From Bugula neritina (Eukaryota > Animalia > Bryozoa), in assembly GCA_964035545.1 (NCBI GenBank), contig OZ037771.1, positions 9,045,408-9,109,407 on the forward strand: 64,000 nt of DNA, in the 5' to 3' direction. How positions within the stretch are numbered: position 1 is the stretch's first letter; the number at the start of each line of letters is the position of its first letter. The position numbers were made by a program, and so were the translations under genes. The notes below the pieces were generated by a model that ran no database searches, was not told the DNA's origin, and worked only from the letters and a program-made list of their open reading frames with translations. This document shows, in pieces, positions 6,901 to 35,391 of the stretch.

Positions 6901-9900
6901 CATTTTTGTTTAATTCTACAATCTAGCTAGTCAAATGTCTTACAATCCTCCCAAACATGGGATATGTTTTCAATTACCCCATAAAAACAATTCACTCAAC
7001 TGCCAGTAACCTAGTCCAATATGGTCTATTCTCACTGCCTACCTGCCTACTCTCTGTTTCAGTCATGTCCGTGGGATGCAAACTTACGAGAATCTCGAGC
7101 TGACTGTTATATTGAGCTGCATGAATACTTTAAAGCGATCAATGACATAAAATCTACAACTAAACTTGTCGGAGATAACACTGGCGCCTTCTACCGAATC
7201 AGCGACTTACACTACCAGCTGGGGGAAGCTGAGGACTCATTGCGGTGAGCTCTAGACTTGATTGTCATAATGAAGTGTCAAGATGTCTGCTAGTAGTTAG
7301 CTCACACATCTGATTGTCAATAATAAGCCTAGGGTATTTCTGTCTTTGGAGTTGTATTTTTTCAATAATTGTTACTAAATCACTGAAAAACAAACAGTGA
7401 TGAAATTTCTAATAGGTGTGGTAACGGAGGTGTAGTGGTAGCAGTAGCAGAAGTTGTGGTAATAGCAGTGGTGATAGTAATAGTAGTAGCAACCAGTAGC
7501 AGTAGCAACCAGTAGTAGTGGTAGTGGTGTATTGTATGATTAGTTTCCTCTGGGTGTTACAGAGAGATCAGAGAATGTCTGAAGTTGGACCCAGATCACA
7601 AGATGTGTTTCCCCTTCTATAAGAAAGTGAAGAAGTTGGTGAAGCAGATGGAGCAGGCGCGTCAGATGAGAAATGAAGGGGAGTGGGATGACTGTGTGAC
7701 TAAGGCGAAGAGTATGCTGAAGACAGAGAGCCATGTACACTCCTATGTCCACACTGCAAAGAGCCACATCTGCCACTGTCAGGCGCAGGTAGGTGTCCTC
7801 TCTCAATATCAACCATCTCAGCTACTCTGGTCTGTAGAGTCAATAGACTTTACAATGCCAACTTCTATGTGTATCATCAACATGCTGCGCAAGAAAATCT
7901 GTCAAATATTGCTACAAGTGTTATATTCACGTTGCACTACATAGTGTAAAAACGTACATTTCTATAGAACAAAACAAGGTGTTTATTGACTTCAGTGTAA
8001 GCTTGTATAATGACGTAGTACATGGTTGATCAGAGTATAAATAAGTATTAAAAATTTGCATTCATTGTCTTTGCATGGGTTTGCAAGTTAAGAATCTTGG
8101 TGGTTTATGTTCAAAAGAAAGAAACAAAAAATTTAAGTAAATTTCCAATTTGTGTTTGTAGCATTACTTACGTCCATTTGTTTATTCGTGCTTTATCATT
8201 TCATATGTTTAATAAATCCTAGCTTATAGCCAATAGAAAAGAATGTGTGTATTACTGATACAGAATGCTGAACTATAGTTGTAATACATATAGAGTTTGT
8301 GTGTTACAGGCAGGTTACAAGGCAGAGGCAGTGAAGTCATGTAATGAAGTGCTAACTCTGGATAGTCATAGTGTAGATGCTCTGTGTGATCTTGCAGACT
8401 TGTATATACTAGACCAAGATTATGAAACAGGTAAGAGTTGGTTCCTCTCTGCACATCTGGTCGCTGCATCACCACTATTACACTCAGAGTAGAGTAAGAA
8501 TAAAGCAACTCATACTGCCCAGACATAGCAAAACTATCTTCAGTGTACATGTGCGCTACTGGTATTTGTAGCTATTGAATATTTCCAAAAGGCCCTTGGT
8601 ATCTCAGAGGGACACCACAGAGCTAAGGAAGGCATGGAGAAAGCTCAAAAGTTGTTGAAGCAATCAAAAAAGAGAGACTATTATAAAATATTAGGAGTTC
8701 CAAGGTTTGATATTATTGCTACTACCTCTGCTTGTAGAACACGTTGAATGAATACGCCTATTATTACTGCTTTCTAGTTAGTTGAAAGAAATATTGTGTA
8801 AAGTATGAGTAAATATGTAGACTGTAATGCTGTTGACTGCACTTTTACCGTTCAGGAGCAGTAGTGGAGAAATTGAAATAGCCTAAGCTTTTTAATTTTT
8901 TTTAGTAAATTTTGGTTTGGGGTGCAGGTTTGAATTCTTGCGGGAACTTCTTTTGTTACATTACAAATCTAGAACACAGGCTTTTCTCAATTTCTCCATT
9001 ATTGCACCTACCTCACATTTACACATGTACACATCTACACACCACACACACACACACACACCATTGTGAGTACTTACTTATTCTCAAAACATTTACCAAA
9101 GTTCTATATGAAAACTACCTTTGAAAGTTGGATCATTATCATTGAGTATTTCTCATTGCAAATTCATTTTTGGTTGTAATAACAGTCTTCAAGCAAATTC
9201 AGTGTTCATGTTTTAGAGGAAAGTATTGAAATTTGCCAGCTTCTGGCACACAGAATTTACCTAGTAATAAGTGTAAGTTCACTAGAACATTGTTTGCAAG
9301 GCTTCATTCTGCTACCTTGTTTATTTATCTAGAAATGCCCCCAAAAAAGATATATTAAAAGCATATAGAAAATTGGCCATGGTTTGGCACCCTGACAAGT
9401 TTGAATTGGAGGAAGAAAAGAAGGAAGCAGAGAAGAAATTCATGGACATTGCGGCAGCAAAAGAAGTTCTAACAGATCCCGGTAGGTGCTCACTCTTCTA
9501 ATAAGAGATTCCTCTAGCACCCCCTACCTCTCTTTCATCTGCCTCTTGTGGCCCTCCGCCAACCTCTGTGTGTTGTATGATTACTTGATGATTAAGGAGG
9601 AAGTTGCTAGTTGTTTGCTAAGCAGTTATGTACTACAAACTCATTGCTATGCATGTCTGTGGTGTTCACTTGACTTATGTAGTAATGCAATATCCCAACT
9701 AATATCATTTCTCACCCACACATAGTAGGCATAAAGCTCAGTTGTGTAAACTCTAATGGTGTACATTATATGTATCAACATGCTTTTGCTTGGAACAAAT
9801 ACAAGAATTGAGTTTAAATTAGAGTTGTGCTCTCTTCACATGAACTAATTTTCATAGGTAACAAATATCATGACTTTATGGTTAAATATGTGTTGACTTT

Positions 9901-10049
9901 CTGTTGTAGAAGCAAGACAGAAGTTTGATAATGGAGAAGACCCTTTGGATCCTGAACAGCAGCAAGGCCAGGGAGGTCATGGCCATCCATTCTTCCATGG
10001 CTTCAACCCCTTTGGCAGTGGTGGAAGTTTTAAATTCCACTTCAACTAA
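3934..10049 (+). CDS. DNAJC3: DnaJ homolog subfamily C member 3 (P58IPK), ER TPR + J-domain co-chaperone. Exons 3934-4018, 6035-6270, 6367-6441, 6698-6841, 7063-7244, 7563-7788, 8310-8430, 8572-8704, 9333-9481, 9910-10049
   Basis: Signal-peptide-like PFLIVSIYLQMQG; HLEMGKKFLAAGQLADALSHYHAAVDLDPDNYLTYFKRATVFLAIGKSK; KRDYYKILGV...WHPDKF J domain; C-terminal FKFHFN*. All introns GT-AG with consistent phases. Confidence 0.97.
4690..5740 (-). mobile_element. Degenerate RTE-type LINE fragment (RT C-terminal half) in DNAJC3 intron 1
   Basis: Minus-strand remnants PWAMLFADDLVL (~5685-5720), KTAI*STLTYGNETWPVT (~4990-5045) and VEGSRGHGWPKQW (~4750-4790), with stops and frameshifts. Confidence 0.75.
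5092..5365 (+). mobile_element. tRNA-derived SINE-like sequence with two degenerate tRNA-like heads (5092-5164, ~5315-5365)
   Basis: A box TGGTGTAATTGG and B boxes GGTTCAAATCC / GGTTCGAATCT; cloverleaf pairing is poor. Interrupts the LINE fragment. Confidence 0.5.
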
Positions 10050-10467
10050 TACTAGGATTCTATGTTTTCAGACGAGGAGTTGCCTATGCATGCTTATTGT
10101 GTAACTGTAACGATCTCAACCTTCAAATATTTTTTGCAATCAATGTTGCACAATACCACAGAACAACTTGAGGAAATTAATTTCATCATTTAATAATTGT
10201 GTAGCTCATATTCATATATTATATTATATAAATATTAATTTTTGTGAATAGTTTGATAAAATACAAATTTTGTGTAAAAATCTCTGCTGATTTTTGTAAG
10301 TGAAGCTACACACAGAAAATGTTTGATGATATATCAAAAGATCCTAAAGATAACTGTTCATAAATGTTGAACATTCAAACTCTTAAATGCTAAAAGTCAG
10401 TAATGGTTTGCCATGAATAATAATTTTTGGTAGCAGTTATAAAATTGATAATATTAAGCATAAAGTA

Positions 10468-13068
10468 TTAGTAATGAAACAGGTATTTGTCCATACTGTC
10501 ATGAGTTGTAGGAGCTGTTGCTGTAACACGAGTGTCTCCTCTTTTAGTCTTTAGAGGGTACTCTTGTTTTAAAGTTCTGCGTACTTTAGTCATAAATTCC
10601 TTGAATTCACACTTCTTTAGTTCTTTATGTTGCTCAACCCATTTATCCATTAATACTGGTATGAACTGATTCCTTTTACTTCTCACCCCTTCTTGCCCAC
10701 TTTTCCATATGATGAAATTTGTCCAGTTCTGTTCATCAATCTGGGAGTTCTCCTTACCAGTACAGCTTTGTACTATCATCACCTAGCAGTAATAAATAGT
10801 ATAGGTATAATGTTTATAGCTCTTTGTTAATTTCTGTAATAGTTGGTGGAAAGCATAATTTGCTATTTTTTTATTTACCAATTACAAATAAACTTAAGGT
10901 TTATAGGTGCTAATTATGCAAGTTCAAAATAGCTTACTCTTTGTTGAGGCTAAATACATATTATATATGACCAAAACGATGTTAGTTTATAGAATTGTCA
11001 ATAGAATTAGTTGATGCATACAAATGGTTACCTTTGGTATCTCTTCATGTATGTGCTCATTGATTTTGTTAGCTATCCAGTTGAGAGGTACTAACTGCTC
11101 GTCCTGCTTAGCCTGCTCGGCCTGTTTGTCCTGCTTGCCCTGCTTAGCCTGCTCGACCTGTTTGTCCTGCTTAGCCTGCTCGGCCTGCTTGCCCTTTTTG
11201 TCCTGCTCGGCCTGCTTGCCCTTTTTGTCCTGATCGGCCTGCTCGGCCTGCTTGCCCTTTTTGTCCTGCTTGGCCTGCTCAGCCTGCTTGCCCTGTTTGT
11301 CCTGCTTAGACTGCTCGGCCTGCTTGCCCTGTTTGTCCTGCTTAGCCTGCTTGCCCTGTTTCTCCTGCTTAGCCTGCTCGGTCTGCTTGCCCTGTTTGTC
11401 CTGCTCAGCCTGTTTGTCCACACCTTGTACAGAGCTACTTGTTCCATGAGCCATTATAAATACTATCAGTAGTGAACACTGCTGCTGTAATTCTTTTAGA
11501 TGCGTTTCTAAAGACTGCCTCAATTTTTCAGCTGTCCAGTCTTCTTCCTTTTTGATGGTTTTATACCCCACCTCCCTTAGCTTAGTTAACAAGTTTTCAG
11601 CTTCTTCTTGCCCATTATTGCATTTTCTTCCATGCTCATCTTTTTCTTCTCTACCTTCTCTGCCAATTAAGTTATAGTACACCAATGCACATTTGTGAGC
11701 TCCTTTTTGTTTATTGGTGACAACAAACCTGTCAAGGAACTCATTTAGCAAAATTATGGTGTCTTGAGTCAGGCTCTCCCTTCTTGCTTCTAGGTGTATC
11801 TTATCTTGACTAGCTTCATCAAATTCATTATCAAAACCCTTACTATCTTCAAATTGTTGGTCTAAGATGTGGTCCAGGCGCTTGGAATATTGGGCATTCT
11901 TTGCCACTCTGACAAGCAAGCAAGACCACTCACTTCTGAATGACATGAATACCTCCTTTATATATTTTTTTGGCAGAAATTCTACTATCTTTATATAGAC
12001 TTCATCATTCGCCACATAAAGTAAGGCGTGTTCCAACAATGAGCGGTGTGGTGGTGGTAGCTTGTCGAACTTTTCTGTAAGCGCTTTGTATGCATGTAAC
12101 TGCGTTTCTGTTTCAGTTAAATTTTGTTTTGGTGTAAACATTCCTAGCACAGATTCAAACTGTTTAACATTAGATGTTAAAGAATAGAGGAGGAGATATG
12201 TGAACTCTTCAGAAAGACAGTTGGTAAAACTTGAGCCAGTTATATCTTCATAAACGTCTATCAGTTTTTGGATCAAAGTATTGTTGGTAGATGCAAAAGC
12301 TATAGCAAAGGCAAGAGATGTAGCTTGATCTGCTGGAAGAGTCTGTTGCTTGCTATTTCCAACTCTTTTAAAAAGCTCTTCAACAACATTTTTATTTAGT
12401 TTCAACATGTTTTCTACACATGTAGCTACCACTTCTTCTTTCTGGGAATCCACCAATATAGCAAAATGGAAGAGAGGCATGTTAAGAGCTTCAAACTCTG
12501 TAATTTTCAAAGATGCTAACTCGCTGTTGATGTTCAAAGCCCTGACAATAAAATCATGGTCTTCTTCCAAAAGCATGTAAGCCATGAAGTTGATTTCACA
12601 GCCCACATTCTGAGTTTCAGGCATAAATTTAATTTGTGTTGTACTCTTGATATCTTTTCGACAAAATTTATCCCCAAAGTAAAATAATTTCTTAGTAACA
12701 ACTTCGTATAATTTTTGATGATCACCACTGATGATGCAAGTTTCAGCCTGCTGCCTTAGTTCTTCTCTTTCAGTTTCAAGAGCTTCTTCATTGGCATTTA
12801 TCAGCAGTGGAGTTAATCCAGGACAGCGGACATACGACTTATCTGAAGGCTTTTTTCTTGCTGAGCTGAACAAATATTCAAGTACTGGATAGATGTCTTC
12901 AATATCATGCTCCTCAACTGCAGGGCTGCTCTGTCCATTAAATATATTATGTAATTTATCTCTCAGCCTTTCAAGTTCTGGTTTGTTTTCAAAATTTGCT
13001 GAATCAAGAAGTTGAATAATTGACGTTTCATGGACCTGTTCTTCAACTTGCTGCATGTCTGTTTCCAT
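10468..13068 (-). CDS. Caspase-domain (peptidase C14-like) protein with ankyrin-like N-terminal region, copy A; coding exons 13068-11032 and 10782-10468 (~783 aa)
   Basis: p20-like ALVYYN...EEAENLLTKLREVGY...WTAEKL...SLLIVFIMAHG; a phase-0 GT-AG splice joins IPK|VMIVQSCTG (cf. KPK..IQACRG); p10-like NFIIWKSGQEGVRSKRNQFIPVL. Ankyrin-like motifs PLFHFAIL, TSLAFAIA, SLLEHALL are weaker. Confidence 0.85.
11101..11415 (-). repeat. Coding 9-nt tandem repeat, 35 x (K/E)Q(A/D/G), inside the caspase domain
   Basis: Units such as cctgcttag / cctgtttgt; 105 aa inserted between VQGVD and EQLVPL. Confidence 0.95.
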
Positions 13069-15381
13069 CTTTCAATCTACCAATTACCAATTAGCAGTTT
13101 TAAAACAACACCAGTAACATTAGAATAGGCATCTTTGTTATAAGCAGCTATTCTAAATCTTAATAATTGTGGATATTCATAATCATGTATGTTCATGCCA
13201 AAACATATAGCGTAATGGGTGGGGGGGGGGGTCACAACTGCCATAGGGTTACAAAAAGCCGTCAAATTGTGATAGAACTTATCGACTGTGAGTTGTGATT
13301 TCTTCTTTAATAAAAAAGCAATGACATAATTGTTCAGTCATTGTAATTTCAACAATAGCGGAACATACATGTTGACGAGGCGAGTAAAGATTTGTTTCTG
13401 CCTACCTTTTGTAAGCTTTTTAAGATGTTGTTAAAGCTTTATAACTTTTTACACTCAAAGGTGACAAGCCTAGTTCTTACTGATATTGTTGCCCTTGCTT
13501 GTATTTACATTGCTAAACTAGTATAACAGCAGATTCTAAAATAAATTTTCCTTGAGCCCCGTTTATTTTCAACTTGGGCACAATGGGCCACCTAATCATT
13601 GCACCTTGATTACTACCATTAGTTTGCTTGCCCAAAAGTCAGTTGAAATTTTGGTAAATTCATAGATATAGCCATAACTGTTTTGTAAAATATCAAAGAT
13701 ATCATGGTAAGATTACTAACTGGTGTAGCATTTAGACTAGATAATAGATATTATTAAACTAGTAACTTGAAAAACAGAAGAATGAGACCAGAAAATTCAA
13801 AATTCGGTTCATTGTGCCCTCCCCCTGTTATTCCTACTGATAAGAGCCCATATCAATCTGTTTAGCCCATCGATTTAATCTATAGCAAAGTATTACATGT
13901 ATGAGAAATAGCAGTTGCAGTATAGAGTGTGCGTGCGTGCGTGCGTGCGTGTGTGTGTTTATCCAAACAACATGGATAAAGACATAACATGGTGTCAGGT
14001 ATCATGACCTGACATCTTCACAACCAGGGATGCAGTGGGTATATAACACAAGGCATAACTATAGGCAGTTCAAGCTACTGGCTTTGACATTAACTGTAAG
14101 AAAAGTAGATTCCGTTTTTTAATTATTGACTTAAAGTCGATGGTGCACTAAAGTTAATACCTGGTAGTAGTTCTTAGACTTTGTTACTGAGCTATGGAAG
14201 TCAAATAATACTGGATAAGATCAGAGTCACACTGTGAAGATTAATTTAAGTTAGTACCTAAAGCTAATAGTATTAGCAGCACTCAGCAATGGCGTCGCTT
14301 TAACAACCAACTCCCCTCAACTTGAAGGTTGACAATCTGAAGCCGTTGGATTTCGTAATGCTTCATCAACTGATAGCCCGAATAGATTTATTAGGTTAAG
14401 TTATCTCATGCCAAAGGGTTAAAGCCTAAAGGTCATATATCACTCTACAGTCTCCTTCATGCTAGCTTGTGTGAAGCTAATCAGATTGATGCAGGGTTAA
14501 TGATCACAGGAGTAAAGAATGAAGAGCTGCTCACTCACAACTGACTGTTGCTGATGGTGGTCGTTGCAACATTCACTTAAGCTTGCTTTCCACCAAGGGA
14601 AAATATATTGCACTACACAACATAGTTTTATTATATAAAACAATGACACTGTGCACAATGCACTATGATTTCCTGTAAAATTCACAAGTATGTATGTGAC
14701 CTTAGTGATTAAATGGCTAGTGGCTAGACATAAAGTTGGTGATGGAGCTGTACAATAATATGTTAAGAGCCAAAGCAAAGTAGTTATTCATCACCATTGT
14801 TAATATTTATCTAAATAACTTTAAAGTTGAGCAGTTTTTCTGACTTGCATGTTTAACTTATTTAGGCTTATGCATGGGTTTATTTATGCATAGTTTGTTT
14901 ATAGAAATGTGAATTTTAATATATGTAATTTATAATAAATAAGTCAATATCGGCATAATAAATCATGTTCCTAGTTCTAGTCCTAGTCAAAACAACAACA
15001 ATAAACCAATTTAATCCTATGCAGATAAAACACACAGTTGACCTAATAGTTTTATTTCTAGTTTTTGCTCCTACAATGATTGTGTTTATTTTTATTGTGT
15101 AGGCCTATATGCATTGTACTTAATATAAATCGGGTTCAAATCCAGAACTCCTAAAAATTGCTTGCCATGAGTGTGTGTGTGTGCGCGTGTGCGCAAGTGC
15201 GCGTGTGCGTGTGAACATGTACTAGTAGCAGCAGTAGCAGCTAGCAGTAGCGACATGTTATAATGGTATGGTGATGATATGTGACAAGATGAATATAAAA
15301 TGATAATATCACTTTGAAATCTAGCAACTAACTAACTCTTTAGCAAGAACTACACAAGTATTATATATAGATGCGGACTAT

Positions 15382-15772
15382 TGTGGTAAATTTATGTTGT
15401 GTGCATGTGTCCTTTGTTGTCGAGATCGGCACTTCGGTCCTCCGAAACACCGATATGCCGATTCTCGGCATATCGGAATACCGAAGTGCAGAAATGCCAG
15501 GATCGGCATTTCGGATTCCCGAAGTGCCGATATTCGGCATTTCGGGCCTCCGATCTCGGCAAACAAAAGAATGTCTTTGTCCTGCATATATATAAAAGCC
15601 AGCGAGTTCCAGTGTAGTTCAGTCTACTACTGGAGCTCGCTGGATAAAGACCATTGATTCACTCGGACTATACTACAATAAAGTTATCTACCTTCTACCT
15701 TATTTCTCGCCTTGTTTCTCATAACAAGCATGTAAAGCACTAGTTTCATTCACAACCCACAAAATTATCACA
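15382..15772 (+). repeat. 5' LTR (391 bp)
   Basis: Near-identical to 25497-25895; TATATAAAA box ~15589, AATAAA ~15678. Confidence 0.95.
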
Positions 15773-15773
15773 T

Positions 15774-15791
15774 TGGTGGCAGCGGTGGGAT
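15774..15791 (+). promoter_or_regulatory. Primer-binding site complementary to tRNA-Leu 3' end
   Basis: TGGTGGCAGCGGTGGGAT is the complement of ...ATCCCACCGCTGCCA-CCA, the 3' end of eukaryotic tRNA-Leu(AAG/TAG). Confidence 0.9.
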
Positions 15792-15823
15792 TCTACGAAT
15801 AGCTAGTTGCTGAGAGGAATAAG

Positions 15824-16691
15824 ATGGCCCCAGGGGACCCAGCCCCTGCGGCAGCAGCACCGCCAGCCCTCACTGTTGAGGCGCTGGTTACAGCCCTCCA
15901 GGGATTGCGGGAGCAAGGACAGGCATCACCTGGTGACAGGTATCGCCTCCAGCCCCCGACTTTCGGAGGAGATGGAGACGTGGAACAGTTCATCAAGGAC
16001 TTCGAGGACGTGGCCACCACCGCTGAATGGCCAGTACGGGTGCGCGTCCTCCAACTCCGGGCCTGTCTGACAGGCCGGGCCAGGAACTTCGCACTGGGAC
16101 CCGACGAGGCCCACATCATGCGGGCTCTTAGGGCCCGGTTCGGCCTGACCACGGAAGAGGCGTCAGACCAGCTACAAGTGATGAGGAGAGACCGAAGGAC
16201 ACCTCTGGAAGATCACGCTAACGAGGTAGAGCGCCTGGCTCAGGCTGCTTTCGGTCACGCCACTGGCGAATATCGGAAGCGCCTCGTTTTTAACGCGTTC
16301 TTCCGGAGCGTGAACCACCCGGACCTCCAGTGGTACTGGCTGGCCGCGAAGGTCAAGAGCCTGGACGAAGCACTAGAGATGGGGAAGGCCTACTTCCAAG
16401 TAGAAGAACCACGAAGGGCGAACTACGCAGCTCGCAACCCCACAAGTGGCAGCAGCAGCTACTCCGTCGCCTGAGCAGACGCAGCTCAACATGCTGATGA
16501 GCATGATGAAAGGCCTGCAGGCTACGGTGACAGAGTTGCAGCGCAACCAGACGGACAGGCGGGCTCCCCGCTCGCGGGACGACCCTGTCCGCCCCCCTCT
16601 GCCCACTTGTTGGGAGTGCGGGATGCCAGGACATGTGAGAAGGCACTGCCCTAAGGGACAGAAGCCTTTAAACACCCAAGGCTCACGGTGA
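15824..16691 (+). CDS. gag: Gypsy Gag with CCHC knuckle, one frameshift near 16430-16450
   Basis: Capsid-like ORF 15824-16474 continues in another frame (16446-16691) containing CWECGMPGHVRRHC. Confidence 0.85.
16667..16673 (+). promoter_or_regulatory. -1 ribosomal frameshift slippery site T TTA AAC
   Basis: In-phase X XXY YYZ heptamer just before the gag stop; a -1 shift enters the open 16688-17200 frame. Confidence 0.7.
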
Positions 16692-17049
16692 ATTCCGCCA
16701 CCCGTGCGCCCCACGCCAATCCGGTCCGGGATAGGACTCGGAAGACAACAGAAGAGACCTCTCCAGAGTCGACCTACATCGAGTGGCACGCAAACCGGAG
16801 ATCTCGGAGAACGAAAGGCCTACCCGATCCCCCTGCCATGCCACTCGATACCCGGATGGAACTAGAAGAAACCGGATGGCAGGCACCTCGGAGATCTCGG
16901 AGACCGCAAGGTCTACCCGATCCTCCAGCCTGGCCACTTTGTAACCGGTTCGCGGGGTTGCCCGAGGAGGTTGTGGAGGAGGATTCAGCTTACTCGCAAG
17001 AGTACCCCAAGCTACCCTCCCGACCTCAGAAAACCCCCGTTGTCTCTAA

Positions 17050-20000
17050 GACAAAGAGGAGGCCCAAGTTGTGTCTCCCCCAGAGACTGACCGCTCCAGG
17101 AGCACCCAGCCGTATGGAAGCAGCTACTTCCTGCCCGGAAAGATTTCGGGTAAAGCTGCCACATTCCTACTGGATACTGGGTGCACTACCAACCTGCTGA
17201 GTAGGCGTCTCTTTGACACTCTTGGTGCACGAGAGCGGGCGAGCCTCGAGCCGTATGAAGGTGCGCATGGTACGTTGGCGGACGGATCATGCTATCCTTT
17301 CTACAGCGTCATTTCACTACCTGGACGCGTTCGTGATCAAGCGATTCACGAGACGTTCATAGTCAGCCAGCTGAAGGAGGACGCCATCTTGGGAATGCCC
17401 TTCCTGGAGAAACACCAGTGTCACATGGATTTCCAGAAGTCAGTGGTGGTGATGGCTGGGAAGGAACTTGTCTGTGTTGACAAGTTTGGCAGGCCCTTGG
17501 TGGGCGGAGTCCAGGTAGTGCGGGACTGCACAGTTCCGGGGAGGTCCCAGGCGACTCTCCGATGCAGAGTCAACTGCAAGGGGATCGCCGGCCTGGGGAT
17601 GGTTGAAGGAACGCACGGAGCCATCCGACTAGCAAACAGCCTGAATCGGCTAGATTGTCGGCAAGAGCTCCTCGTGCAGTGCATCAACCCCTTCACGGAA
17701 CCTGTCCAATTATCGGCTGGAGCGCTGGTGGGGAAGTACCACTCCATCCAGGAAGCGGATGTGGGTCCGGCACTGGAGACAGTGGCCGACACCCAGGGGA
17801 ACCCCCCTCACACCAGACGAGAAGCAGTCCCGGAGCACCTAGCTGACCTGTATGGCGGAGCATGCGGAAACTGTACGGGTAGTACTGAACGCCAAGTACT
17901 GGCTCAACTACTCGCGGAGTACAGTGATGTCTTCAGTCGTGGCGATGGAGACATGGGGCTGACTAAGGTTATCTCCCACGAGATACCCCTGGCGGCCGGC
18001 ACCACTCCCATCAGGCAGCCTACCCGACGTCTAGGCCCGGAGAAGGAGAAGGAGGTGAGCCGACAGGTACAGGATCTTCTGGACCGGGATCTGATTGAGC
18101 CTGCCCACGGTGCGTGGAGCTCCCCAGTGGTCCTGGTCAAGAAGAAGGATGGTAGCTGGAGATTCTGCGTGGACTACCGCAGACTCAACAACGCTACCAT
18201 CCAGGACGCCTACCCTCTCCCCAAGATAGATGAGTCTCTAGACGCCCTCGCGGGTAGCAAGTACTTCAGTACTTTGGATCTGCTTAGCGGGTACTGGCAA
18301 GTGCCCCTCAGTCCTGATGCACAGGACAAAGCAGCATTCATTACTCGCGACGGGCTCTGGAAGTGGAAAGTACTGCCAATCGGACTGACGTCCGCTCCGG
18401 CAACATTCCAACGACTCATGGAGCAAGTCCTCAGTGGGTTACACTGGAAAACCCTCCTCATCTATCTGGACGATGTCATTGTCATCTCCCCAGACTTCTC
18501 GACTCATGTCAGCCGTCTGTGGGAGGTCTTTGACCGTCTCCGGGCAGCTGGACTGAAGCTGAAGCCCTCCAAGTGTGCACTCCTGCAGCCAGAAGTCACG
18601 TACCTGGGCCATGTGGTTGGCCGTGATGGGGTCGCTACCGACCCGGAGAAGGTACAAGCTGTGAAGGAGTGGACCGTCCCCCGTGACCTCCCTGAGTTGC
18701 GTGCATTCCTGGGCCTAGTAGGGTACTACCGGCAGTACATACCTGGGTTCGCAGGAGTGGCTCAGCCGTTAAATCGGCTGACCGCAAAGGGAGTCCGGTG
18801 GCAGTGGACACAGGAGGAGCAGCAGGCATTCGACCACCTCAAGCGACGGCTAATGGAAGCACCAATCCTGGCGTATCCTGATCCCGCCAAAGAGTACATT
18901 CTGGACACCGACGCCAGCGACCACAGCGTGGGAGCCGTCTTGTCTCAAGTCCAGGGTGGAAGTGAGGTGGTCGTGGCTTACTACAGCAAGACTCTCGCGG
19001 CCGCCGAGAAGAACTACTGCACCACTAGGAAGGAACTCCTAGCAGTAGTCAAGGCGGTCAAGCACTTTCGGCCATATCTGTATGGGAAATCGTTCCGTCT
19101 GCGAACAGACCATGCATCACTGATATGGCTGTGTAAGCGTGCAGAGCCCTCGAGCCAGGTGGCTCGTTGGCTAGAGATTCTTGCCGAGTTCTCTTACCGG
19201 ATAGAGCACCGTGCAGGCCGGAAGCATGGGAACGCCGACGGCATGAGCCGCCGGCCGGTAGAGGACTGTAAGCAATGCCTGCACATTGAACAGCGGGACG
19301 GGGGACCCGCTCGCCTTGACGTGGAAGCAGAGCTAGTGAAGGGCACCGCCTACCAGTGGGAGCACGGCCATCTTCGGACCGAAACCCACCAGGACGGTGT
19401 CCAAGCACTCCACGCCAACCCTACTCTGCACCAGAACGTCAAGGAGCTGTGCCGACTCCAGGAGACGCTACCCGGCGCGGTAGCGGACATCTTCCGGGCC
19501 AAGAAGGAGGGCCGACGACCTAGCGAGGAACAGCAGCAGCAGGGAGACGTTGAGTTCCAACTCCTCTGTCGTCGCTGGGATGCCCTCAAGGTCAGTCCTG
19601 ATGGCCTCCTGATGATAACGTTAGCAGCAGACAACCGCCAGCAGGAGAGGGACCGCGTCGTCTGTCCACGGGCCCTCCGGCGGAAACTGATCTGGGACAC
19701 CCATAAGCAGGCTCATGCTGGAGTCAGTCGGGTCATCAGGTGTCTGCGGCTGCGTTGGTATTGGCCCGGAATGACTCGGGACGTACGACTGCAGGTACGG
19801 CAATGCGAGGTCTGCCAAGCTAGCAAGCATGGCCGCCCCACGGAAACCACTGGTCGACGCCGGCTGTACGCTGGTCGACCGTGGCAAGTAGTGGCGGTAG
19901 ACCTCGTTGGGCCTATGCCGTTATCCGCCAGAGGGAACACCTGGATACTGGTGCTCACGGACCACTTTACCCGGTGGGCGGACGCTCTGGCTATTCCAGA

Positions 20001-23000
20001 CGCAACCGCCCCCACGGTGGCCCGGACCCTGGACCAACATGTGTTCTGTTACCTCGGTTTGCCCGAGCAGATACATACGGACCAGGGCGCCCAGTTCCAG
20101 TCCCAGCTCATGGGAGACCTCTGCCGGATATGGGGGGTGAACCAGAGTCGGATCACCCCATATCACCCGCAAGGGAACGGAGTCGTCGAGCGGAACAACA
20201 GGATGTTGGGTGACGCACTCCGGAGCCTGCTCCTTGGTCGAGGTCAGGAAGAATGGGACGTGGTGCTGCCGCAGATCATACGGGCTTACCGCAGCACACC
20301 ACACTCCGCCACGCAGGAGACCCCAAACTTCCTGATGCTAGGCCGAGAGACGCGGGTCCCGGAACACCTGACGTACCATGTTCCTGCCCCCGAGTCACCG
20401 GTACACGAATATGTGGAGGGTCTGATGGACATCATGGGCAAGGCTCATGATGCACTGCGCACACAGCAGTGGCAGACCCGCACAGAGGACTCGGAGGAGC
20501 CCCCGTTGTACCAGGTGGGAGACTGGGTCTGGATGGTGAGCTACCGTAGGCGACGCGGACAGTCGGCTAAGCTTCAGCCCAAGTTCGTCGGTCCCTACTG
20601 CGTAGTGGCGGTGCTGCCCAACCACACGTACCGTGTGGAGCGCTCTAGACAGATCTCCGTCCAGAGCGAGCAGCGCCTCAAACCTTACCATGCCAGCCCA
20701 GACGCGGTGGGTCAGGCTCCGCCTCTCCTGGAGCCCCACCATCAGCCCAACCGTCGAGGACGGGCCACCCGGCCCCGAGAGGTGGAAATTATGGTCCCAA
20801 GGGAGACGGACCAGGAGCAGGCCGCCTTGATAGAGCAGCTGGAGCGGCAGCAGAGAGCAGAGCGGGAGCAGGAACAGCGACAAGCTCTTGGATCACCACC
20901 CTTCCTGGGGGAGGACACCCCCACCCCCGTGTTGGGTGAAGACGGGGACCCCCCTACTAGGCTAGCCCAGGAGCCACCAACACCACCAGTGCCTGTTCCA
21001 CTTGAGAGGAGCCAGCGGTCAAGAAGACCCCCCAGGTACCTGGCAGACTATGCTGTAGGGCACCTGGAGTGGCCCCCTCCTGAGGACGACCCCCCCCCCC
21101 GCACTGACTACCACCCCATCTTGGTTGGAAATTCCCTCCATCACCTCGGAGAATTCCACCAAGAAGAAGAAATGGCCGACCAAATTTCGGAAGACACTCG
21201 ATCACGCGAGTTGTCTTTTCGAAATCCGGGGGAAATTCCCACGAGCCACGCAACTCGGGCTTCAGCAGGTAATACTTCTGAAGCACGAGGTTCGGCCATT
21301 TCTCATTCTGATTTCACACAGCTCGCACGGCAATTACAGCTCAAGCTAAATTCTGATTCTAATACTAATTTTGACTTTAATACTGTTCTCCAAACGCTAT
21401 CAGCAGCTATGGGAATTACTTTACCAGACACGCAATCAGGTATTTCTTCTAGATTAGATCCTCCAGTTACGGAGTCTAGTCAAACTAAAGTAGACTGGTC
21501 TTTACTAGACTTACTTGGTTCTGATTTCTTAGAACCGGAGGCCGAGATGGATCTTGGAGATGACTCTGCCATTGATACCTTGTTAAATCATGATGTAGGC
21601 TCAGTCAATTTCTGCGATACACCTCAGCCCTCGGTTTTTAATTTAACTCCATACACACCTGTGCCGAATTTCGGCGATAGTGAGACCGGCTTATCACAGC
21701 CTCTACTATCTGTTCTAGAGGAGCGTATGGACATTGAGGAGGCCAGTCAGTCCGACTCCCCACTCCCACCGACCCTTGCTTCGGCTTCTAACAGCCAGCA
21801 GGCCGCCACCTCCTCCACAGAGGTGTGTTCTGCCATCGTTAGTGGCCCTGACCCCAAACCGGTCGAGCTTCAGCTCACGGCCGGGGAGGAGCAGGGCATC
21901 CTACACGGCGACCACCTGCCAGCAGAAGAAGATAACTCCCCAATACTGGCCCTGCCTCGGGCCCTGGTCGCCCGCCAGTATTGGGTGACTGGACCCACCA
22001 ATCTGAAGATTGGCGAAGCTTGCGGTGAGCCGGGCAACCGCATCTGCCATGAGTGTAAGAGGAAATTCTCCTCTGCACGGCGGTTGCGCGTACACGCCCC
22101 ACAGCACTACATCAACGTGTTTTGCCCGTGTGGGGAATTCTCCTACCAAAGAGACTATGTGTTGAGACATCAACGCATAGCTCACTGCCACACGGGCTAC
22201 ACGTTTGCTGTAGACCAGGCCTCCTTTCCCGAATTTCGGGACCTGGTGCTGCCACACGTGGCGGATCCCCATAAACGGGCTGCTCTCGCCCTGGGATTCC
22301 CCGCGTGTAGGCCTGTTCGGGAGGAAGAAGGGGAGCCCACAGTTAGTTTAAGGTCATTACTTTCCAGATTCAAGCACTGCTTTATGCTATATATAAACGG
22401 TTTCCAGGGGATAGCTCGAACAGTTTTTGTCTCACATTAACAAATTTTACATGAAAAGATAGCTCTTGCATTCCTCTTTCATATACTTTTTTAATTTTTC
22501 AATAAAAAATTTTCTGAGAAAGTTGTTGCATAATAAGTAAAATTTTATACCCTCCATGTTCCACTGCTGTAGCACAGGGGATTCATTTTATAAAGTCTAA
22601 AAGTTAAACTTGACATTCCTTGATATGTTTTCTCTAATATACTTTCTTTGTTTTTTGAAATTCTGTTTATGCTCTTCACAATTTGGTAAAAACATACACC
22701 ATTTTGCAAGTTTCACTGCAATTTTCTAAATTCTTCATATGGTGGTTCTAGCTACGCTCCTGTGACTAATTATAACATTTCTAGTACGTTTGCCGCTCTG
22801 CGCTATCACAATAACATATAGTACCCTCTCGCACAAATTGGCAATCTATTGGATTTCTGCCAAGATAATGTTCCCTGTTTTACATTAGCACTTAGCTGAA
22901 TCATCTCACTATGTTACAATAATATATTGAAAATGCCTTAGCACAACATAATTCTTTGTTTGTTTGGCAGAGTTAATTTCAGCTAAATCACTTCACTTCT

Positions 23001-25101
23001 CGTCAGTAAAGGTCTGTCTATAGCACAGCAGGTGTACTTTCAGTTTCTCTAATTCACATATGATTATTTTAAGTACATTGTATTCTATAAGATCAATTTA
23101 AGGTTTAGTCCAGCGTTCAGTATCTAATTATTATGCATGTATGTTGTCTTACTGTTGAACAAAAGTTAAAAAACAACTTTACACTTATAGCCATATTTAT
23201 TATACATGCGTAGGATTTGCATAAATTGACAAAAAAAATTGCAACAAAACAGGGTTGAACTATGACCAACCAACTCGTCGCTGACGCCTCTAACCTCTGG
23301 ACCACGCAGTCATCGTTAATGAGACACGCACTATATGAGTCACTATCATTACATAAATATTTCGCGCGCAAACGGGTTATAATTATTAGGCTGTCAATTC
23401 ATGTTGATAGCAGTCAACTGTTGCAATAGTCTCGGGTTACTAGCAAAGCTAATGGTTTTGAACAAATAACCCAAAAGTTTAAAAATAAGTAGCTTGCGTA
23501 TTACTAGCTACAAAAACAGGTCTGAAATAGACTGGTAAAGCAAGCTCTTATTGTAGAGTTTGCAGATGTGCTCTAAAATAAAACTTAAACTGTATGCTAT
23601 TACATAAGTATTTGTATGCGAGAGATAAATAGACATTACTGAGTTTCTGGAAAACAACATACTTGAAGTTAACTTTGACAATGGTGTGTTATTTTCATCA
23701 TAGCTAGCCTATAGCATAAATCTCTAATCATATGAATCTTTATGAAGCCCACAGCTCATGTAAGGGTGGCAATGTAATTTGAAATGAACAATTATGTTGC
23801 TGCATTGTGTCTTAGGTATATTAGAGAGCAGAATTTGGTTTTAATAGCCTACCCCAACGGCATTCTACAATGCAGCTTATATGCTGGCAGTTGTAATAAG
23901 TACTGCCAATAGCAAGGTTACTATCACTGCTAGCTCTGTGCAGTATGTAACCTCTTGAATAATTGCGCCAATTTTAAACTCTTGGAAGTTGGCCAAGTTA
24001 TCATATCGCAGCCAGCCACCGGAGACAAAGCATCAGAGCTATTCATATAATATTATACTGATGCACTTGGTAGCAGAGTGGCTAATCTAATATAGTTCAT
24101 AGTTCAACACCCTTTACTTTGGGAATACAGCCTCTTTTTTTAGGTTTACCTTACAAAGCATGAAAATATCTAAACTGATATTCTGATAATTTAGAGGTAC
24201 ATTTTGAAAACTAGGTTAATTGCACTTGTTTGCACAACAACAATAATAAAATAGATATTATGCAGTATAATAAAAACACACATAATACTATATAATATAT
24301 TATAATGATAATAATATAATATTATAAGTACCATTACTGCATTTTATAAATCACATGGTTGCCAAAAAAATGTATCACAAATTTTGTAATTATACATCAA
24401 AAATAGAACTAGCTAGGCAGCAGGTTAGAATAGAGTAAATTTTTAAAACATGAAATCATGATTTGACTATTGTTTTATTTAGGCCAACCAACCTAGGAAT
24501 ACAAGATTGGGTTTTAGCGGACAGTTTATAACATTTAGCTTTTGAGCCAGCAGCACTGGCACTTGTGAAGTATAGGCAAAGTTAGTGAAGCGAGACTAAC
24601 AAGCACTCAAATACAAGGCATATTGAGACACAATAACAAGTCAGGAGCGTATAAATTGAAAAGAATGTGGAAGGGGGACTATGTTTTTCAACAAGCTATA
24701 ACTTAAACACGAATTGGCTTTTGAAAAAAATAAAAAAGTATATTGGAGAACATAAATTTCTTTATCTTTTCATATTTTTTTTGTTCCTGTGACATTCAAC
24801 CTGTTCGAGCTATCAGTGGAACATTGTTCATATAGAACATAAAGCACCTGGCAAAGAGCCAGAAAATGAAAAGTATGACCTTAAACCAACTGTGCCCGCC
24901 GCGACACCCCAACCGGCAGCCACCCAGCCACTTCGAGTCATACTGGCACGGGTCGGACCAGGCGCCCGGGCCGATTCATCGGACCTGGGCCCCCGGCCCT
25001 CGGCGGCGGGCGAGAAGCAGACGCACCGCCAGCGACGTCCTGCCATGGTACCACCGACCGCCCTAGACATCAGACGTCGGCCCAGTTGGCAGAGGAGGTA
25101 A
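17050..25101 (+). CDS. pol: Gypsy Pol (PR-RT-RNase H-IN) with long C-terminal extension; interrupted by insertion 22338-24894
   Basis: LLDTG protease, YLDD RT, DTDAS RNase H, HHCC + D,D,E integrase, GPY motif. Removing the insert plus one CC restores EEEGEP|AATPQP in frame with ORF 24892-25101. Confidence 0.93.
22338..24894. mobile_element. Non-autonomous CACTA/EnSpm-like DNA transposon nested in Gypsy
   Basis: TIRs CACAGTTAGTTTAAGGTCAT / ATGACCTTAAACCAACTGTG, with imperfect inverted similarity over roughly 150-200 bp; 2-bp CC TSD supported by restoration of the host reading frame; AT-rich, no transposase ORF. Confidence 0.85.
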
Positions 25102-25464
25102 ACCAGTTACGCCGGCAGCTCCGCAGGTATGAGGAGGAGCTGGGGCAGCTCAGGAGACGAGTTAGCCGCCTAAAGCGGGGCCGATCTGGAGACCGCCGCT
25201 GAGACTATTTGTATAGTATTTTCTTTCCTATTCTTATTTCTTTGTTTTTTTTATATATGTGTGTAAGTTTTTCGTGTAATGTATGTACCTATTCATGCTC
25301 TGTTTTCTTGTGTGTGCACAATTTTCCCTGTTTTTTTGTTATCATTGTATTATTAATGTCACTGCATGTTTACCGTATTGTCTTTTTTTTTGTGTTACTT
25401 ATCAACTGTGTGTTTTATTGTCGTGTCATTCCCTGTTGTGTGTTTGTGTTGCGTGCGCCTCTTT

Positions 25465-25486
25465 ATCGGAAAGCATGCTTTCCGAT
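25465..25486. repeat. Perfect 22-bp palindrome immediately 5' of the Gypsy PPT
   Basis: ATCGGAAAGCATGCTTTCCGAT is its own reverse complement. Confidence 0.9.
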
Positions 25487-25496
25487 GGGGGGTGTG

Positions 25497-25895
25497 TGTG
25501 GTAAATTTATGTTGTGTGCATGTGTCCTTTGTTGCCGAGATCAGCACTTCGGTCCTCCGAAACACCGATATGCCGATTCTCGGCATATCGGAATACCGAA
25601 GTGCCGAAATGCCAGATTCGGCATTTCGGATTCCCGAAGTGCCGATATTCGGCATTTCGGTGTTTCGGAGGACCGATCTCGGCAAACAAAGGAATGTCTT
25701 TGTCCTGCATATATATAAAAGCCAGCGAGTTCCAGTGTAGTTCAGTCTACTACTGGAGCTCGCTGGATAAAGACCATTGATTCACTCGGACTATACTACA
25801 ATAAAGTTATCTACCTTCTACCTTATTTCTCGCCTTGTTTCTCATAACAAGCATGTAAAGCACTAGTTTCATTCACAACCCACAAAATTTTCACA
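25497..25895 (+). repeat. 3' LTR (399 bp)
   Basis: Matches the 5' LTR; followed by TSD CTAT. Confidence 0.95.
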
Positions 25896-26798: not shown

Positions 26799-28731
26799 AC
26801 AGAGTACCATGGCCCACACCTTCGCAATAGTAGAAACTTATGATATATATATATTTATATATATATATATCATCGATGCATGTTGAAATCTTTTGAGTAC
26901 CGACCAAATGAGTTTGCTATTGATCTGGCGGTAATCACTAAATATATGTAAAAAAGGAATAAGATTCTGTAAATGTATTTTAAAATCACAAAAATATGGG
27001 GATGATTAAAACATGTAATGTAAAATTTCTTGTTTGAAGTCAATTATGTAACACATGTTTCAAAGTAGTGCTTCATTGTATAAAGTCTTCTTATCTTTAT
27101 TGCTACCATTAATTTCATTTCTCCAAAGTATATTCTGCAGTTTAGACAATCCTTGCAGTGACATACACCAGTGCACTGCATTTAAGGTCAGGTCAGGTCA
27201 GGTTGATCGCCAACCTGCTATTGGTAACCATGTAATCCAGTACTACCTGTTGCATGGGTCAGGCCGTCGGCGACTAAACCGACAACTCCTCTTTTAGAGA
27301 AACCTGGGGGAACTAAAAACAATATCCACCAGGAAACATCTCAGGAATTCTGACAGCACTACCATCAGCTGGTAAGGGCGGATGAGTTTCTTACAGACCA
27401 ACGGCTGTCCATTGCAACTTATTATATCCCAAATTGTCGAGGTATTCGTGCCATTGGATCAGGGTATGACAAGCCAAGCCAGTGGCTCTCTGTAGTGCAT
27501 CATGAGAACCACGTTAATCCACGCACAGCATTCTGCCTGCAAACACTCACCGACAAAGTCCTATGGCGATTAGAAGGTAGCGACGGGGACAGGGTAGTGA
27601 AGCCTAGAAGTCCTCAGCTCCAAACTAGCACATAGGTGGTGAAAGCTCGTCAGTCGCTCATCTCTTGGATTGGACAGGAGAGATGTTCGGTTATGGCTTT
27701 CATGACTGAGCAGCCCTTTTTAGGGACCGCCCTGCTCACCTCAATCCGAGAAAGGGACTAGAAAATGTGTCCCAGACATGGTCTGTTCAACCTCAACCTG
27801 GTTGAAATACCGCGTCCAGATGGTTCACCTTCATGCGGTAGAAAATAGCATATGACATTGGCAACATGGAACGTTCGAACACTTATGGATAATAAGAGCA
27901 GCGACAGACCTGAGAGGCATACTGCATTTGTGGCGCGTGAACTCAGAAGACTGAACATTGATATCGCTGCACTTCAAGAGACTAGACTCGCAGATGAGGG
28001 TCAGTTGACTGAGGTGGGTGGCGACTATACATTCTATTGGAAAGGAAAAGAGGCAGATGACCACAGGCTGTATGGAGTGGGTTTTGCTGTCAAGAATAAA
28101 CTGGTAAAGCACATGGATCATCTTCCTGTTGGAATCTCGGATCGACTGATGACTCTGCAAATAAACACTGGAAATAACAGGAAAGCTACCCTGGTCAGCG
28201 CATATGCTCCAACGTTTTTGGCTGAACAGGCTGACAAGGAGCTATTCTACTCAACTCTTGATCACGCAGTGTGACAGATCACAATTGCTGACAAGGTTGT
28301 TCTACTGGGAGACTTCAACGCAAGAGTTGGTACTGACAGTGAGACTTGGAAAGGGGTTATCGGCAAAGACGGTATTGGTAATGTAAATGCAAATGGTCTG
28401 ATGCTTCTCAGCAAATGTGCAGAACTTGGACTTATAATCACAAACACCATGTTCAAACAGAAGAATAGGCGTAAAACTTCTTGGAGACACCCACGTCCTG
28501 GTCACTGGCACCTAATAGACTACATAATTACCAGATGCAGAAATTTGGCTGATGTGAAGATTACGAAGGCTATCGATTCATCAGACAGCTGCTGGACAGA
28601 CCGCAGACTTTTAAAAGCTTTGTTGAGCTTTTCAATTTAGCCCACATATCGCCAAGTGAAACACACACCACGACCACAGTTTAATGTCAGACTCCTGCAA
28701 CAACTGGCAGTGAGACAAAACGCGAGACAAA

Positions 28732-28842
28732 ATGTACATTATATGTTATTTAATTTTATTAACCGTATTTCATGAGTTAAAACTGAAAAGTAAGAAGAAA
28801 ATGAAATACGGTTAATAAAATTAAATAACATATAATGTACAT
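28732..28842. repeat. Perfect 42-bp inverted repeat with 27-nt spacer
   Basis: 28732-28773 is the exact reverse complement of 28801-28842; lies at the left junction of the insertion in the RTE. Confidence 0.9.
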
Positions 28843-29351
28843 AGTAACATCACGCAATAATACAAGTATAAAAGTAAAAGTAAAAAAGTAGTAATTATTT
28901 CAACTTGAACTTGACAAGATTTAAAGCTTTCAGCAACAAATATAAACGCCGTATGAGTTAGGCTATTACGGAAGTAGTGTTAGCTACCAAACAGTCCCAA
29001 TCTGTAATTGCCCACGTTTATATGAACTTATTCTCGACCCGGTCGAGCTCACACCCGACTGGGCCGTATCATTTGTGAAATGTCATTTTTAGAAATGTCT
29101 TTTTTCTAAAAGTCAATTTATTAGTTGTCAATTTGGGAATTGTCAATTTGGGAATTGTCTTTTTTGAAGTAGGTGTTTTTGAATTGTCATTTGTAAAATG
29201 TCGCGGATTCTTTTTATGCCTTCATGCCAGTCTGATGCTTTCTCCACTGACTGTTGTAGTTCTCACTAGTCATTTTTGATTTTTGATTAAACTTTCACTA
29301 TCACAACTTTATATATTATATAATTCTAACTCTCCCCAGGAAGGGTAATTT

Positions 29352-29658
29352 TGTTATAATTTTTCGTATTTGGGTTGATATGCAATCCAGAGAGTCTAAT
29401 TACTTGCTAGAGAACTTCACCAGGATAAGTCGAGTGAACGAGTATATATTTTAAGCACAAGAACACATTACAAAAACTATACAAATACATTCAATAATTC
29501 CACACATCTAGATTATTCAACACTCTAACTTCGACTGACTAACAGCGGAAAAACTACTATTGCTACTGACCACTTAAGCCGCTAATTGGCTGTCATTGTT
29601 CCGGGTCAATTACGCGACCCTGCGTATTGTGCTGCTGGAGGCTCCACGAGCCACCACA
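29352..29658 (-). mobile_element. Putative solo LTR within the RTE insertion
   Basis: TGT...ACA ends, near-TSD ATTT/ATAT, LTR-like size; no second copy in the window. Confidence 0.35.
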
Positions 29659-31959
29659 ATATAGGTATGTCAAACATTGTTTTGCAACAATTTTGTAATT
29701 TTTGTATGTTTCATTTTTCTTTCAATAATGTCTTTATTATCAAATCGTATTATTGCATTATTGTAGTTTCACGTTGGTTACCAGTTGGTTTCAATAAACA
29801 TCAGCATAAATCCAGCAGTGCAACCTGTTATAAATAAACTGGGGCAGAGTTACACATACCATGCAGTGAGAGCAGATGTGCAGAGATGTATCCAGAAGAT
29901 GCAGAATGACTGGTGGACCGAAAAATCAATGGAATTGCAGAACTTAGCAGACCAAAACAAGACTAGAGAGTTTTTTGCAGAAACCAGAAAACTGTGTGGA
30001 CCAACGTCTCGAGGATCAGCTCCAATCAAGGACAAAGACGGTGTACTTTACAAGGATAAGGATGATATCAGGCAATGTTGGAAAGAACATTTTTCACGCC
30101 TCCTGAACCAGACCTCTACAGTTGACGATACAAGTCTGCGGAAGCTCCCTCAGCTGCAGTACCATGACCAGATGTTAAAAGAGCCATCTTTTCTGGAATT
30201 GAAATCTGCAATAAAAGTGATGAAATGTGGGAAAGCTGCTAGTGCTGATGAAATACCTGCAGAGGTTTTCAAACATGGAGGCTCTGAACTCAGCAGGAGA
30301 CTGCACAAGCTCTTCTTGCGTATCTGGACAACTGAGAGTATACCAGACGATCTACGTGACGCACTGATTGTGACTATTTTTAAAAAAGGTTATAAGACAC
30401 TCTGTGGTAACTACAGAGGCATATCTCTCCTATCGATAACTGGTAAGATCTTAGCCAGGATTCTATGTACAAGACTTTAACACATAGCAGAAGGCATTCT
30501 CCCCGAATCTCAGTGCGGCTTCCAACCAGGTAGAAGCACAGTAGATATGATCTTTGCTGCAAGGCAGATCCAGGAGAAGTGTACAGAACAGCACCAGGAC
30601 CTGTACATGGCCTTTATCCATCTGACAAAAGCTTTTGATACTGTGGACAGAACATCCCTCTGGACTATACTTGGAAAGATTGGATGTCCCCTGAAGTTTG
30701 TGACCATGGTCCATTTCCTTTATGATCAGATGGAAGCATCTATCCTAGTCGATGGCCAAAAATCAGAATCATTCAGGGTGCAAACTGGTGTTAAACAGGA
30801 CTGTGTTACAGCTCCACTGCTGTTCTCCATCTCCTTGTTTGCTGTGTTCTACCTTGTGAAACAAAAACTTTCTACAGGCATCAGACTAAACTATAGTATC
30901 GGGCACTTGTTTAACCTGCAAAGACTGCGCGCCAAGACACTAACATCAGAGACATCAGTCCTTGAGTTGCAGTATGCTGATGACAATGCTCTAGCGGCGG
31001 GTTCTAAAGAACATCTTCAAGCTGCCATGGCTGCATTCAAGAAGGCCTACAACTCTCTTGGACTGAAGCTAAATGCAAAGAAGACACAAGTTATCTGCCA
31101 ACCAAAACCAGGAAAAAATGTTGACCCTCCCACTATTGTTGCTGGGGGTGAAACATTGTGCCCTGTTGACAATTTTGTGTACTTAGGAAACAACCTGTCA
31201 TCAAAGGCGTATCTGAGGAGAGAGATTGACAGACGGCTTCAAGCTGCTAGTATTGCTTACAGCAAGTTGAAGCAGAGAGTCTTTGACAACCCTAACCTGC
31301 AGGTAAGCACAAAGCTGAAAGTGTACAAGGCTGTCATTATACCAACACGTCTGTATGCATCTGAGACATGGGCTACCTATGGTACTGACATAAAGAAGCT
31401 AGAAAATCATCATATGAGAAAATTGCGAGGAATACTGAACATCAAATGGACTGACAAGCGCACTAATAACAGAGTATACTAACAAACAAAGATTCCAAGC
31501 CTTGAAAGCCTCATCATCAAAAACAGATTTCGTTGGTCGGGACATGTAGTGAGAATGAAAGAACACAGACTTCCTAAACATATCCTTTATGAAGAGCTAC
31601 GAATAGGTAAAAGATTGCAAGGAGGACAGAGGAAGCGCTTTAAAAACTGTCGCAAAAACAGTATGTAGCGCTCTCACATCAGAACAGAGACCTGGAAGTG
31701 GAATGCCGCAAGGAGGACCAGATGGAGATCTATGGTTTATAAAGGCATGCAAATCTTTGAAGAAGAAAGAATGCGACACAGATCGAAGACGAACTCAGAG
31801 CTGACCGTAAGAAGGCTTAGCTCAACAGACACACCGAGTGATGACCTCAAATGCTCCCACTGTGACCGCATATGCAGATCACTGATAGGACTCAAAAGTC
31901 ATCAAGCTACTCACAAACAGCTGTAGGCAGACATCATACTTTACTTAGAGGGATAGCAA

Positions 31960-34857: not shown

Positions 34858-35391
34858 TATTAGGATTCCAATTTTTTAGATGAGGAGCTGCCTATGCATG
34901 CTTATTGTGTAACTGTAACGATCTCAACCTTCAAATACCTTTTGCAATCAATGTTGCACAATACCACAGAACAACTTGAGGAAGTTAATTGTGTAGCTCA
35001 CATCCTTATATTATCATATTATATTAATATTAATTTTTTGTGAATAATTTAATGAAATACAAATTTTGTGTAAAAATATCTGCTGATTTTTGTAAGTGAA
35101 GTAACACACAGAAAATGTTTGATGACATATCAAAAGATCCTAAAGATAACTGTTCATAAATGTTGAACATTCAAACTCTTGAATGCTAAAAGTCAGTAAT
35201 TGTTGGCCATCAACAATAAATTGATAGTACTAAGCAGAAAGTACTAGTAACTTGGTATATAACGTGGTTTATAATATTTAGTAGATTAGCTACAAGCTAA
35301 CCTGAGGTGATTGGCTACCTGCCCTACAAGTATTTGAATTTCTTACCAGCTACAAGAGGACTTCATTACAAACTATTGAGTGAGTTGAACC

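Follow-up and report, generated by a model that had tools for sequence, protein, structure and literature searches.

The window, a stretch of 64,000 nucleotides of Bugula neritina DNA, carries on its minus strand two tandem copies, A and B, of a two-exon caspase gene. In copy A, an open reading frame of 693 amino acids (13068-10987) reads through the MAHG motif (11454-11443) to the tripeptide IPK and, as an earlier note on this DNA had claimed, ends before the catalytic Cys (10764-10762). A splice donor (AAG/GTAACC, last exon base 11032) follows directly after IPK, and an acceptor (TAG/GTG at 10783/10782) precedes an exon that opens with VMIVQSCTG. The predicted intron (11031-10783, minus strand) is a phase-0 GT-AG intron of 249 nt situated before the catalytic strand; its sites, length and phase agree with the junction of IPK to VMIVQSCTG put forward in that note. 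The predicted spliced product has 783 amino acids. Exon 1 (11032-13068, minus strand; 679 codons) would contribute a helical N-terminal domain (11734-13068), the caspase p20 subunit up to IPK, whose first part (11413-11733) includes MAHG and the catalytic His codon (11448-11446), and a repeat insert. Exon 2 (10468-10782, minus strand; 104 amino acids) holds QSCTG, a linker, the p10 subunit with S-K-R (10680-10672) at the Arg341 position, and the stop codon.

Donor and acceptor are kept in the related sequences L004-L007 and L073, and the intron position is common to six family sequences, copy B among them. An intron in this place, between P-x and the catalytic strand, is also present in L042, L043, L045, L046, L047, L057, L058 and L060 of the window's genome, and L038 and L039/L075, caspases from other samples, have an intron at a matching position. 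Among the five sequences compared, indels were multiples of three in 12 of 13 cases in exon 1 and in all five in exon 2 but in only 3 of 14 in the intron; taken together, 17 of 18 coding indels thus leave the frame intact. We therefore rejected chance splice sites, given an intron position shared with relatives and other caspases and a conserved frame, and conclude that the two-exon caspase gene is real at the level of sequence.

Copy B (35392-37793, minus strand) follows the same plan, with exon 1 at 37793-35946, an intron of 224 nt at 35945-35722, exon 2 at 35721-35392 and a predicted product of 725 amino acids. The duplication unit also took in the 3′ end of the adjacent TPR-DnaJ (DNAJC3-like) gene, whose second copy (32568-35222, plus strand; 92-94% identical to 7839-10426) marks the unit. 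Upstream homology of copy A stops at about 13209, where an interspersed repeat with at least 40 genome copies begins (13217-13720) and replaces the conserved upstream region some 140 nt before the ATG; for this reason copy A may have lost a promoter or 5′ UTR exon. The corresponding single-copy region (37930-38412, minus strand), a candidate promoter or 5′ UTR exon, is kept by copy B and by the B. neritina alleles. The ancestral upstream neighbourhood is retained by B and the downstream one by A.

An LTR retrotransposon and a LINE lie between the copies. The former is a Gypsy-type element (15382-25895; LTRs 95.5% identical) whose 1789-aa pol ORF (protease, RT, RNase H, integrase) continues into a long C-terminal extension, and the latter a remnant in pieces (27852-31482) with endonuclease-like and RT ORFs. 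A second, degraded Gypsy-like element (230-2955; terminal repeats 86% identical) is related to the one at 15382. Upstream of copy B is a C2H2 zinc-finger gene (39222-46560), syntenic with B. neritina, whose region contains minisatellites at 40186-40418 and 42262-42665.

Caspase domain and helical prodomain

With exon 1 as a single query, every PDB match was a caspase (best E 5e-4), and a profile of 12 p20 sequences matched caspases with an E of 2.6e-12. Homology of the p10 subunit is weak but specific: exon 2 of copy B matches positions 122-228 of Pfam C14 (E 0.009), the sole PDB match of the exon-2 profile is a caspase small subunit (E 0.016), and Pfam C14 was detected in three of seven exon-2 family members. 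Both profiles match caspases, in agreement at the level of homology with the C14 assignment that had been read from MAHG and the S-x-R motif of p10. His-Gly, Gln-Ser-Cys and Ser-x-Arg are invariant across all family sequences despite 20-35% protein divergence, and by homology the product is a member of the caspase family (C14A). A metacaspase or paracaspase was ruled out, since the S1 pocket of these enzymes is acidic, with Asp at 283 and Asp or Glu at 341 (PMC2064784), and the sequences here have Gln and Arg.

The basic S1 pocket of caspases is formed by Arg179, Gln283 and Arg341 (PMC2064784), the last two of which are retained. The Arg179 position (11622-11617 in copy A, minus strand) is Cys/Asn in A and Tyr/Asn in B, L004 and L073, leaving four of the six family sequences without the arginine found in L005, L007 and most paralogues; a neighbouring Arg or Lys might stand in for it. 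The His/Cys dyad, previously described as intact, is indeed present in the spliced model, but this is no proof of activity because neither copy in the window has Arg at that position. The Q-x-C-x-G pentapeptide around the catalytic Cys, which depends on the predicted intron, reads QSCTG in A and QSCAG in B, as had been stated. Its departure from the canonical form is nevertheless not special: QSCRG has precedents in zebrafish caspase-23, in amphioxus and in a sea snail (PMC5965869), and other Bugula caspases have QACSG, QACAG, VACRS, EVCSG or HACSG. QSC was accordingly rejected as a novel motif.

The linker from the catalytic Cys to the first p10 strand is as short as had been described, 14 amino acids with one Asp in A and 17 without Asp in B, and the loop after S-x-R is shortened relative to metazoan initiator caspases. 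In exon 2 of L004 and L073, the p10 helix after NQFIP carries an in-frame tandem duplication of 10 codons. Between the catalytic His and Cys of copy A lies a coding minisatellite of 321 nt (11095-11415, minus strand), rich in Gln, Lys, Ala, Glu, Asp and Gly. By alignment it maps to the β-hairpin after His, presumably a surface position in the caspase fold. Like the missing S1 arginine, this insert goes unmentioned in the earlier note. Its length varies over about 0-105 amino acids: A has 107 codons and B 29, L004 has about 8, and L005 and L007 have 2.

The N-terminal domain (aa 1-445) is predicted to be all-helical. Pfam and PDB searches returned no match to death folds, on which basis a CARD or DED prodomain was rejected; the model of aa 1-150 is of low confidence. 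The result agrees with the earlier note, which had recognised no death fold in the N-terminal 450 or so residues. That note had also called the domain ankyrin-like, a claim which fared less evenly. No sequence test was significant: the Pfam and PDB searches gave no ankyrin match either, an HMM built from the ankyrin repeats of paralogues scored 1.2 bits on copy A (65 of 500 shuffles scored as high, and reversed sequences equally), and profile comparison with hhalign gave ankyrin a probability of 0.1. The ESM neighbours of aa 150-420 that carry a name (0.92-0.95) are, by contrast with these tests, nearly all ankyrin-bearing clusters, with few shared features; likeness to Shigella OspC clusters was taken to reflect shared ankyrin-type features only. 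The AlphaFold model of the N-terminus is a stack of helices, with a pLDDT of 50 overall and of 63-82 over the last third, while the model of the whole of exon 1 (pLDDT 37) was left out of the fold search.

Fold matches were to alpha-solenoids, ankyrins included, all with Z below 8; HEAT/ARM and VHS are among the top matches, and ankyrins match no better than HEAT/ARM. In VIA, the best match (Z 7.7) was a designed loop-repeat protein, and ankyrin domains reached Z 5.6-5.9, below the level meaningful for repeats. The domain could instead be a helical repeat of a different kind, either HEAT/ARM-like or new, that the caspase exon acquired by a swap, as in L046-L048 and L057. The negative ankyrin tests, the presence of HEAT/ARM and VHS among the top matches and the other non-ankyrin helical N-termini of the clade speak for this; against it are the ankyrin-bearing ESM neighbours, the helix-turn-helix motifs PLFHFA, SLAFA and LLEHA at a spacing right for ankyrin, and a top VIA match that is a designed loop-repeat protein with TRPV ankyrin domains within 2 Z. 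We regard this alternative as the less likely one. Together with the solenoid model and the ESM neighbours, four paralogues with the same exon plan and Pfam ankyrins make it probable that the N-terminus, at least over about aa 160-400, derives from a degenerate ankyrin array, most likely that of the paralogues.

Divergence of apparent alleles at the locus

In the B. neritina assembly GCA_010799875, contigs L004 and L073 each hold one copy of the gene between the same zinc-finger and TPR-DnaJ genes and are therefore most simply alleles. A second host contributes L007/L074 and L005/L006, and single-copy synteny is found in L004, L073 and L074. These comparisons cover three individuals and one error-prone assembly, with the allelism of L005 and L074 resting on short contigs. 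Upstream DNA falls into two deep classes, I (A, L004, L074) and II (B, L073, L005), with one of each in all three individuals; the sequence upstream of copy A is 95% identical to L004 and 66% to B. Between L004 and L073, substitutions amount to 27-28% in the 600 nt preceding the gene; within it they fall from 10-20% in the 5′ half to 0-4% in the 3′ half, against mostly 1-9% in the flanking genes (up to 11% beside the gene). L074 and L005 differ by 13-31% across the gene and by 7% after the stop. Informative sites are clustered beyond chance (none of 2000 permutations was as extreme), which indicates that the alleles are mosaics produced by recombination.

The ratio dN/dS lies at 0.58-0.76 in exon 1 and 0.6-1.0 in exon 2, compared with 0.26 in the ankyrin-caspase paralogue L044 and 0.05 in a DNAJC3 exon as controls; between A and B it is 0.43-0.81 in exon 1 and 0.97 (interval 0.55-1.89) in exon 2. 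As it is never significantly above 1, relaxed constraint fits too. Exons and intron have diverged to the same degree (73%). Between individuals, identity is 92-93% for L044 and 65-73% for the repeat-domain caspase. The pattern is compatible with balancing selection over the long term, accompanied by relaxed or diversifying change in the protein. We make no claim of trans-species polymorphism, because roughly the same distance separates the window genome from the B. neritina assembly as separates the alleles from one another.

Unequal crossover between class I and class II haplotypes explains the tandem arrangement of A and B. A rival explanation would be an assembly artefact that placed two divergent haplotypes of a single-copy locus in series. 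Copies A and B do belong to class I and class II, like the two haplotypes of other individuals, and the duplicated flank, at 92-94% identity, is near allelic divergence. The window nevertheless has no gaps, 19 kb of transposon-rich DNA separates the copies, and the upstream region of class I, which should precede A, is missing from the window. We consider such an artefact unlikely, and the gene would be real either way.

Proposed function and competing explanations

Our preferred reading, to which we assign a probability of about one half, is that of a cytosolic initiator-type sensor-caspase with a diverged helical-repeat prodomain, encoded by a locus that is polymorphic under balancing selection and present here as two types in tandem through unequal crossover. 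Initiator caspases are activated by bringing two protease domains together. By analogy, the variable solenoid would bind a variable ligand, either a pathogen product or a non-self protein, and binding would pair two protease domains and activate them by dimerisation; the short linker suggests that activity might not require inter-subunit cleavage. Alleles differing in the S1 pocket and loop insert may differ in specificity or strength, balancing selection would keep the locus polymorphic, and unequal crossover would have brought the two allele types of the window together. An immune or allorecognition role is supported indirectly by the sharp peak of allelic divergence, the mosaic recombination and the high dN/dS. 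In its boldest form, the proposal would make this a locus for self/non-self or pathogen recognition. A single polypeptide, active as one chain, would serve there as polymorphic determinant and as death protease, and its alleles would differ in their binding surface, in the S1 pocket and in a tunable loop; this we hold to be very improbable.

The same observations can be arranged around a protein with little proteolysis of its own, namely a weak regulator or decoy, cFLIP-like or a bait for pathogen caspase inhibitors, that pairs with other Bugula caspases and keeps its dyad while S1 pocket and loops are free to change. In oyster, a caspase whose prodomain is unusual binds gasdermin E but leaves it uncut (PMC12122919), a precedent to which can be added the absence of Arg at the Arg179 position in four of six sequences, an exon-2 ratio near 1 between A and B, and a 105-aa insert tolerated beside His. 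That His-Gly, Gln-Ser-Cys and Ser-x-Arg stay unchanged throughout so diverged a family counts against such a role, which we find doubtful. We think it similarly improbable that the gene is relaxed or decaying, that is, old paralogues drifting and shuffled by gene conversion, with copy A a silent, promoter-less duplicate. Decay would account for the end of upstream homology at the repeat, the high dN/dS, the intron divergence equal to that of the exons and the L007/L074 frameshift, and a genome with at least 179 matches to caspase exons points to birth and death of such genes. It is at odds with the frame conserved in both exons, open frames of 783 and 725 codons, an exon-1 ratio below 1 between A and B, and single-copy synteny; frameshifts in GCA_010799875 also occur in control gene L072 and are probably errors. 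The L007/L074 frameshift itself, in an A run at the S1 arginine, is present in two assemblies of one host and possibly marks a null allele.

Relation to known systems and to other Bugula caspases

The earlier note had proposed a lineage-specific sensor-protease controlled by a repeat domain. A caspase with a non-death-fold helical N-terminus is supported, but the ankyrin-plus-caspase layout is already on record from parasitic flatworms and from one annelid, Alitta virens, bryozoans lying outside that sampling (PMC11463336). Like those lophotrochozoan proteins, which are proposed initiators, the Bugula gene has a repeat prodomain in place of CARD or DED (PMC11463336); unlike them, it combines a repeat too diverged for ankyrin profiles and a very divergent caspase with a linker of 14-17 aa and hyperdivergent alleles. 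As far as sequence can tell, the architecture would work like that of an ankyrin caspase, although ankyrin profiles do not recognise its repeats. What sets the gene apart is its peak of allelic divergence, an S1 arginine that is polymorphic and an insert of variable length. With metazoan initiator caspases (caspase-2, -8 and -9; C14A) it shares p20/p10 homology, His-Gly, Gln-x-Cys and the Arg341 position, and it differs from them in lacking a death fold, in QSC(T/A)G or QSCAV, in an Arg179 confined to some alleles, in the long low-complexity insert after His, and in the short linker and post-S-x-R loop.

Hydractinia Alr, Botryllus fuhc and fungal het genes are recognition or immune loci under balancing selection, the animal loci encoding surface proteins. 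The local peak of allelic divergence, the mosaic alleles and the connection with cell death in a colonial animal recall these systems; the resemblance is one of pattern without sequence homology, and the Bugula caspase would be cytosolic. We know of no locus for allorecognition or resistance identified so far in any bryozoan. The present caspase gene, single-copy and with alleles that are deeply diverged and recombine, offers a marker that can be tested against colony fusion and infection outcomes. Its natural alleles, which either have or lack the S1 arginine, carry inserts of 0-105 aa and include an Asp-free linker, probe the limits within which caspase specificity and activation can change.

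Relatives of the N-terminus were found in protein searches only in Bugula neritina (65-73% identity), and horizontal transfer was rejected as these searches gave no bacterial relatives. Searches of protein databases returned no spliced protein of this gene or of two paralogues, and metagenome scans added no further relatives. Genome-wide, as the earlier note had envisaged, the family could be counted: the caspase exon matches in the 216-Mb genome are clustered on C1, C6 and C7, many with altered pentapeptides, and a profile of the two-exon clade gave 22 matches, about 13 of them with a long first exon. In a tree of the His exon (72 columns), the query falls outside 21 conventional caspases; the tree does not single out its sister group among the two-exon genes. 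With the other two-exon caspases of Bugula (ankyrin type L042-L045, L058 and L060; helical type L046-L048 and L057), the repeat-domain caspase shares a long first exon carrying the prodomain to P-x, a phase-0 intron, a catalytic strand that opens exon 2 and a related p20, but their N-termini have no detectable similarity to its own. Pfam ankyrins occur at the N-termini of the intron-sharing paralogues L042-L045 and of L038, in which they lie upstream in a separate open frame. L046-L048 and L057 are tandem two-exon caspases (C1, 1.05-1.11 Mb) with a different, unclassified helical N-terminus and an xEACQ motif, a type represented in JGI assemblies by eight variants at 53-84% identity.
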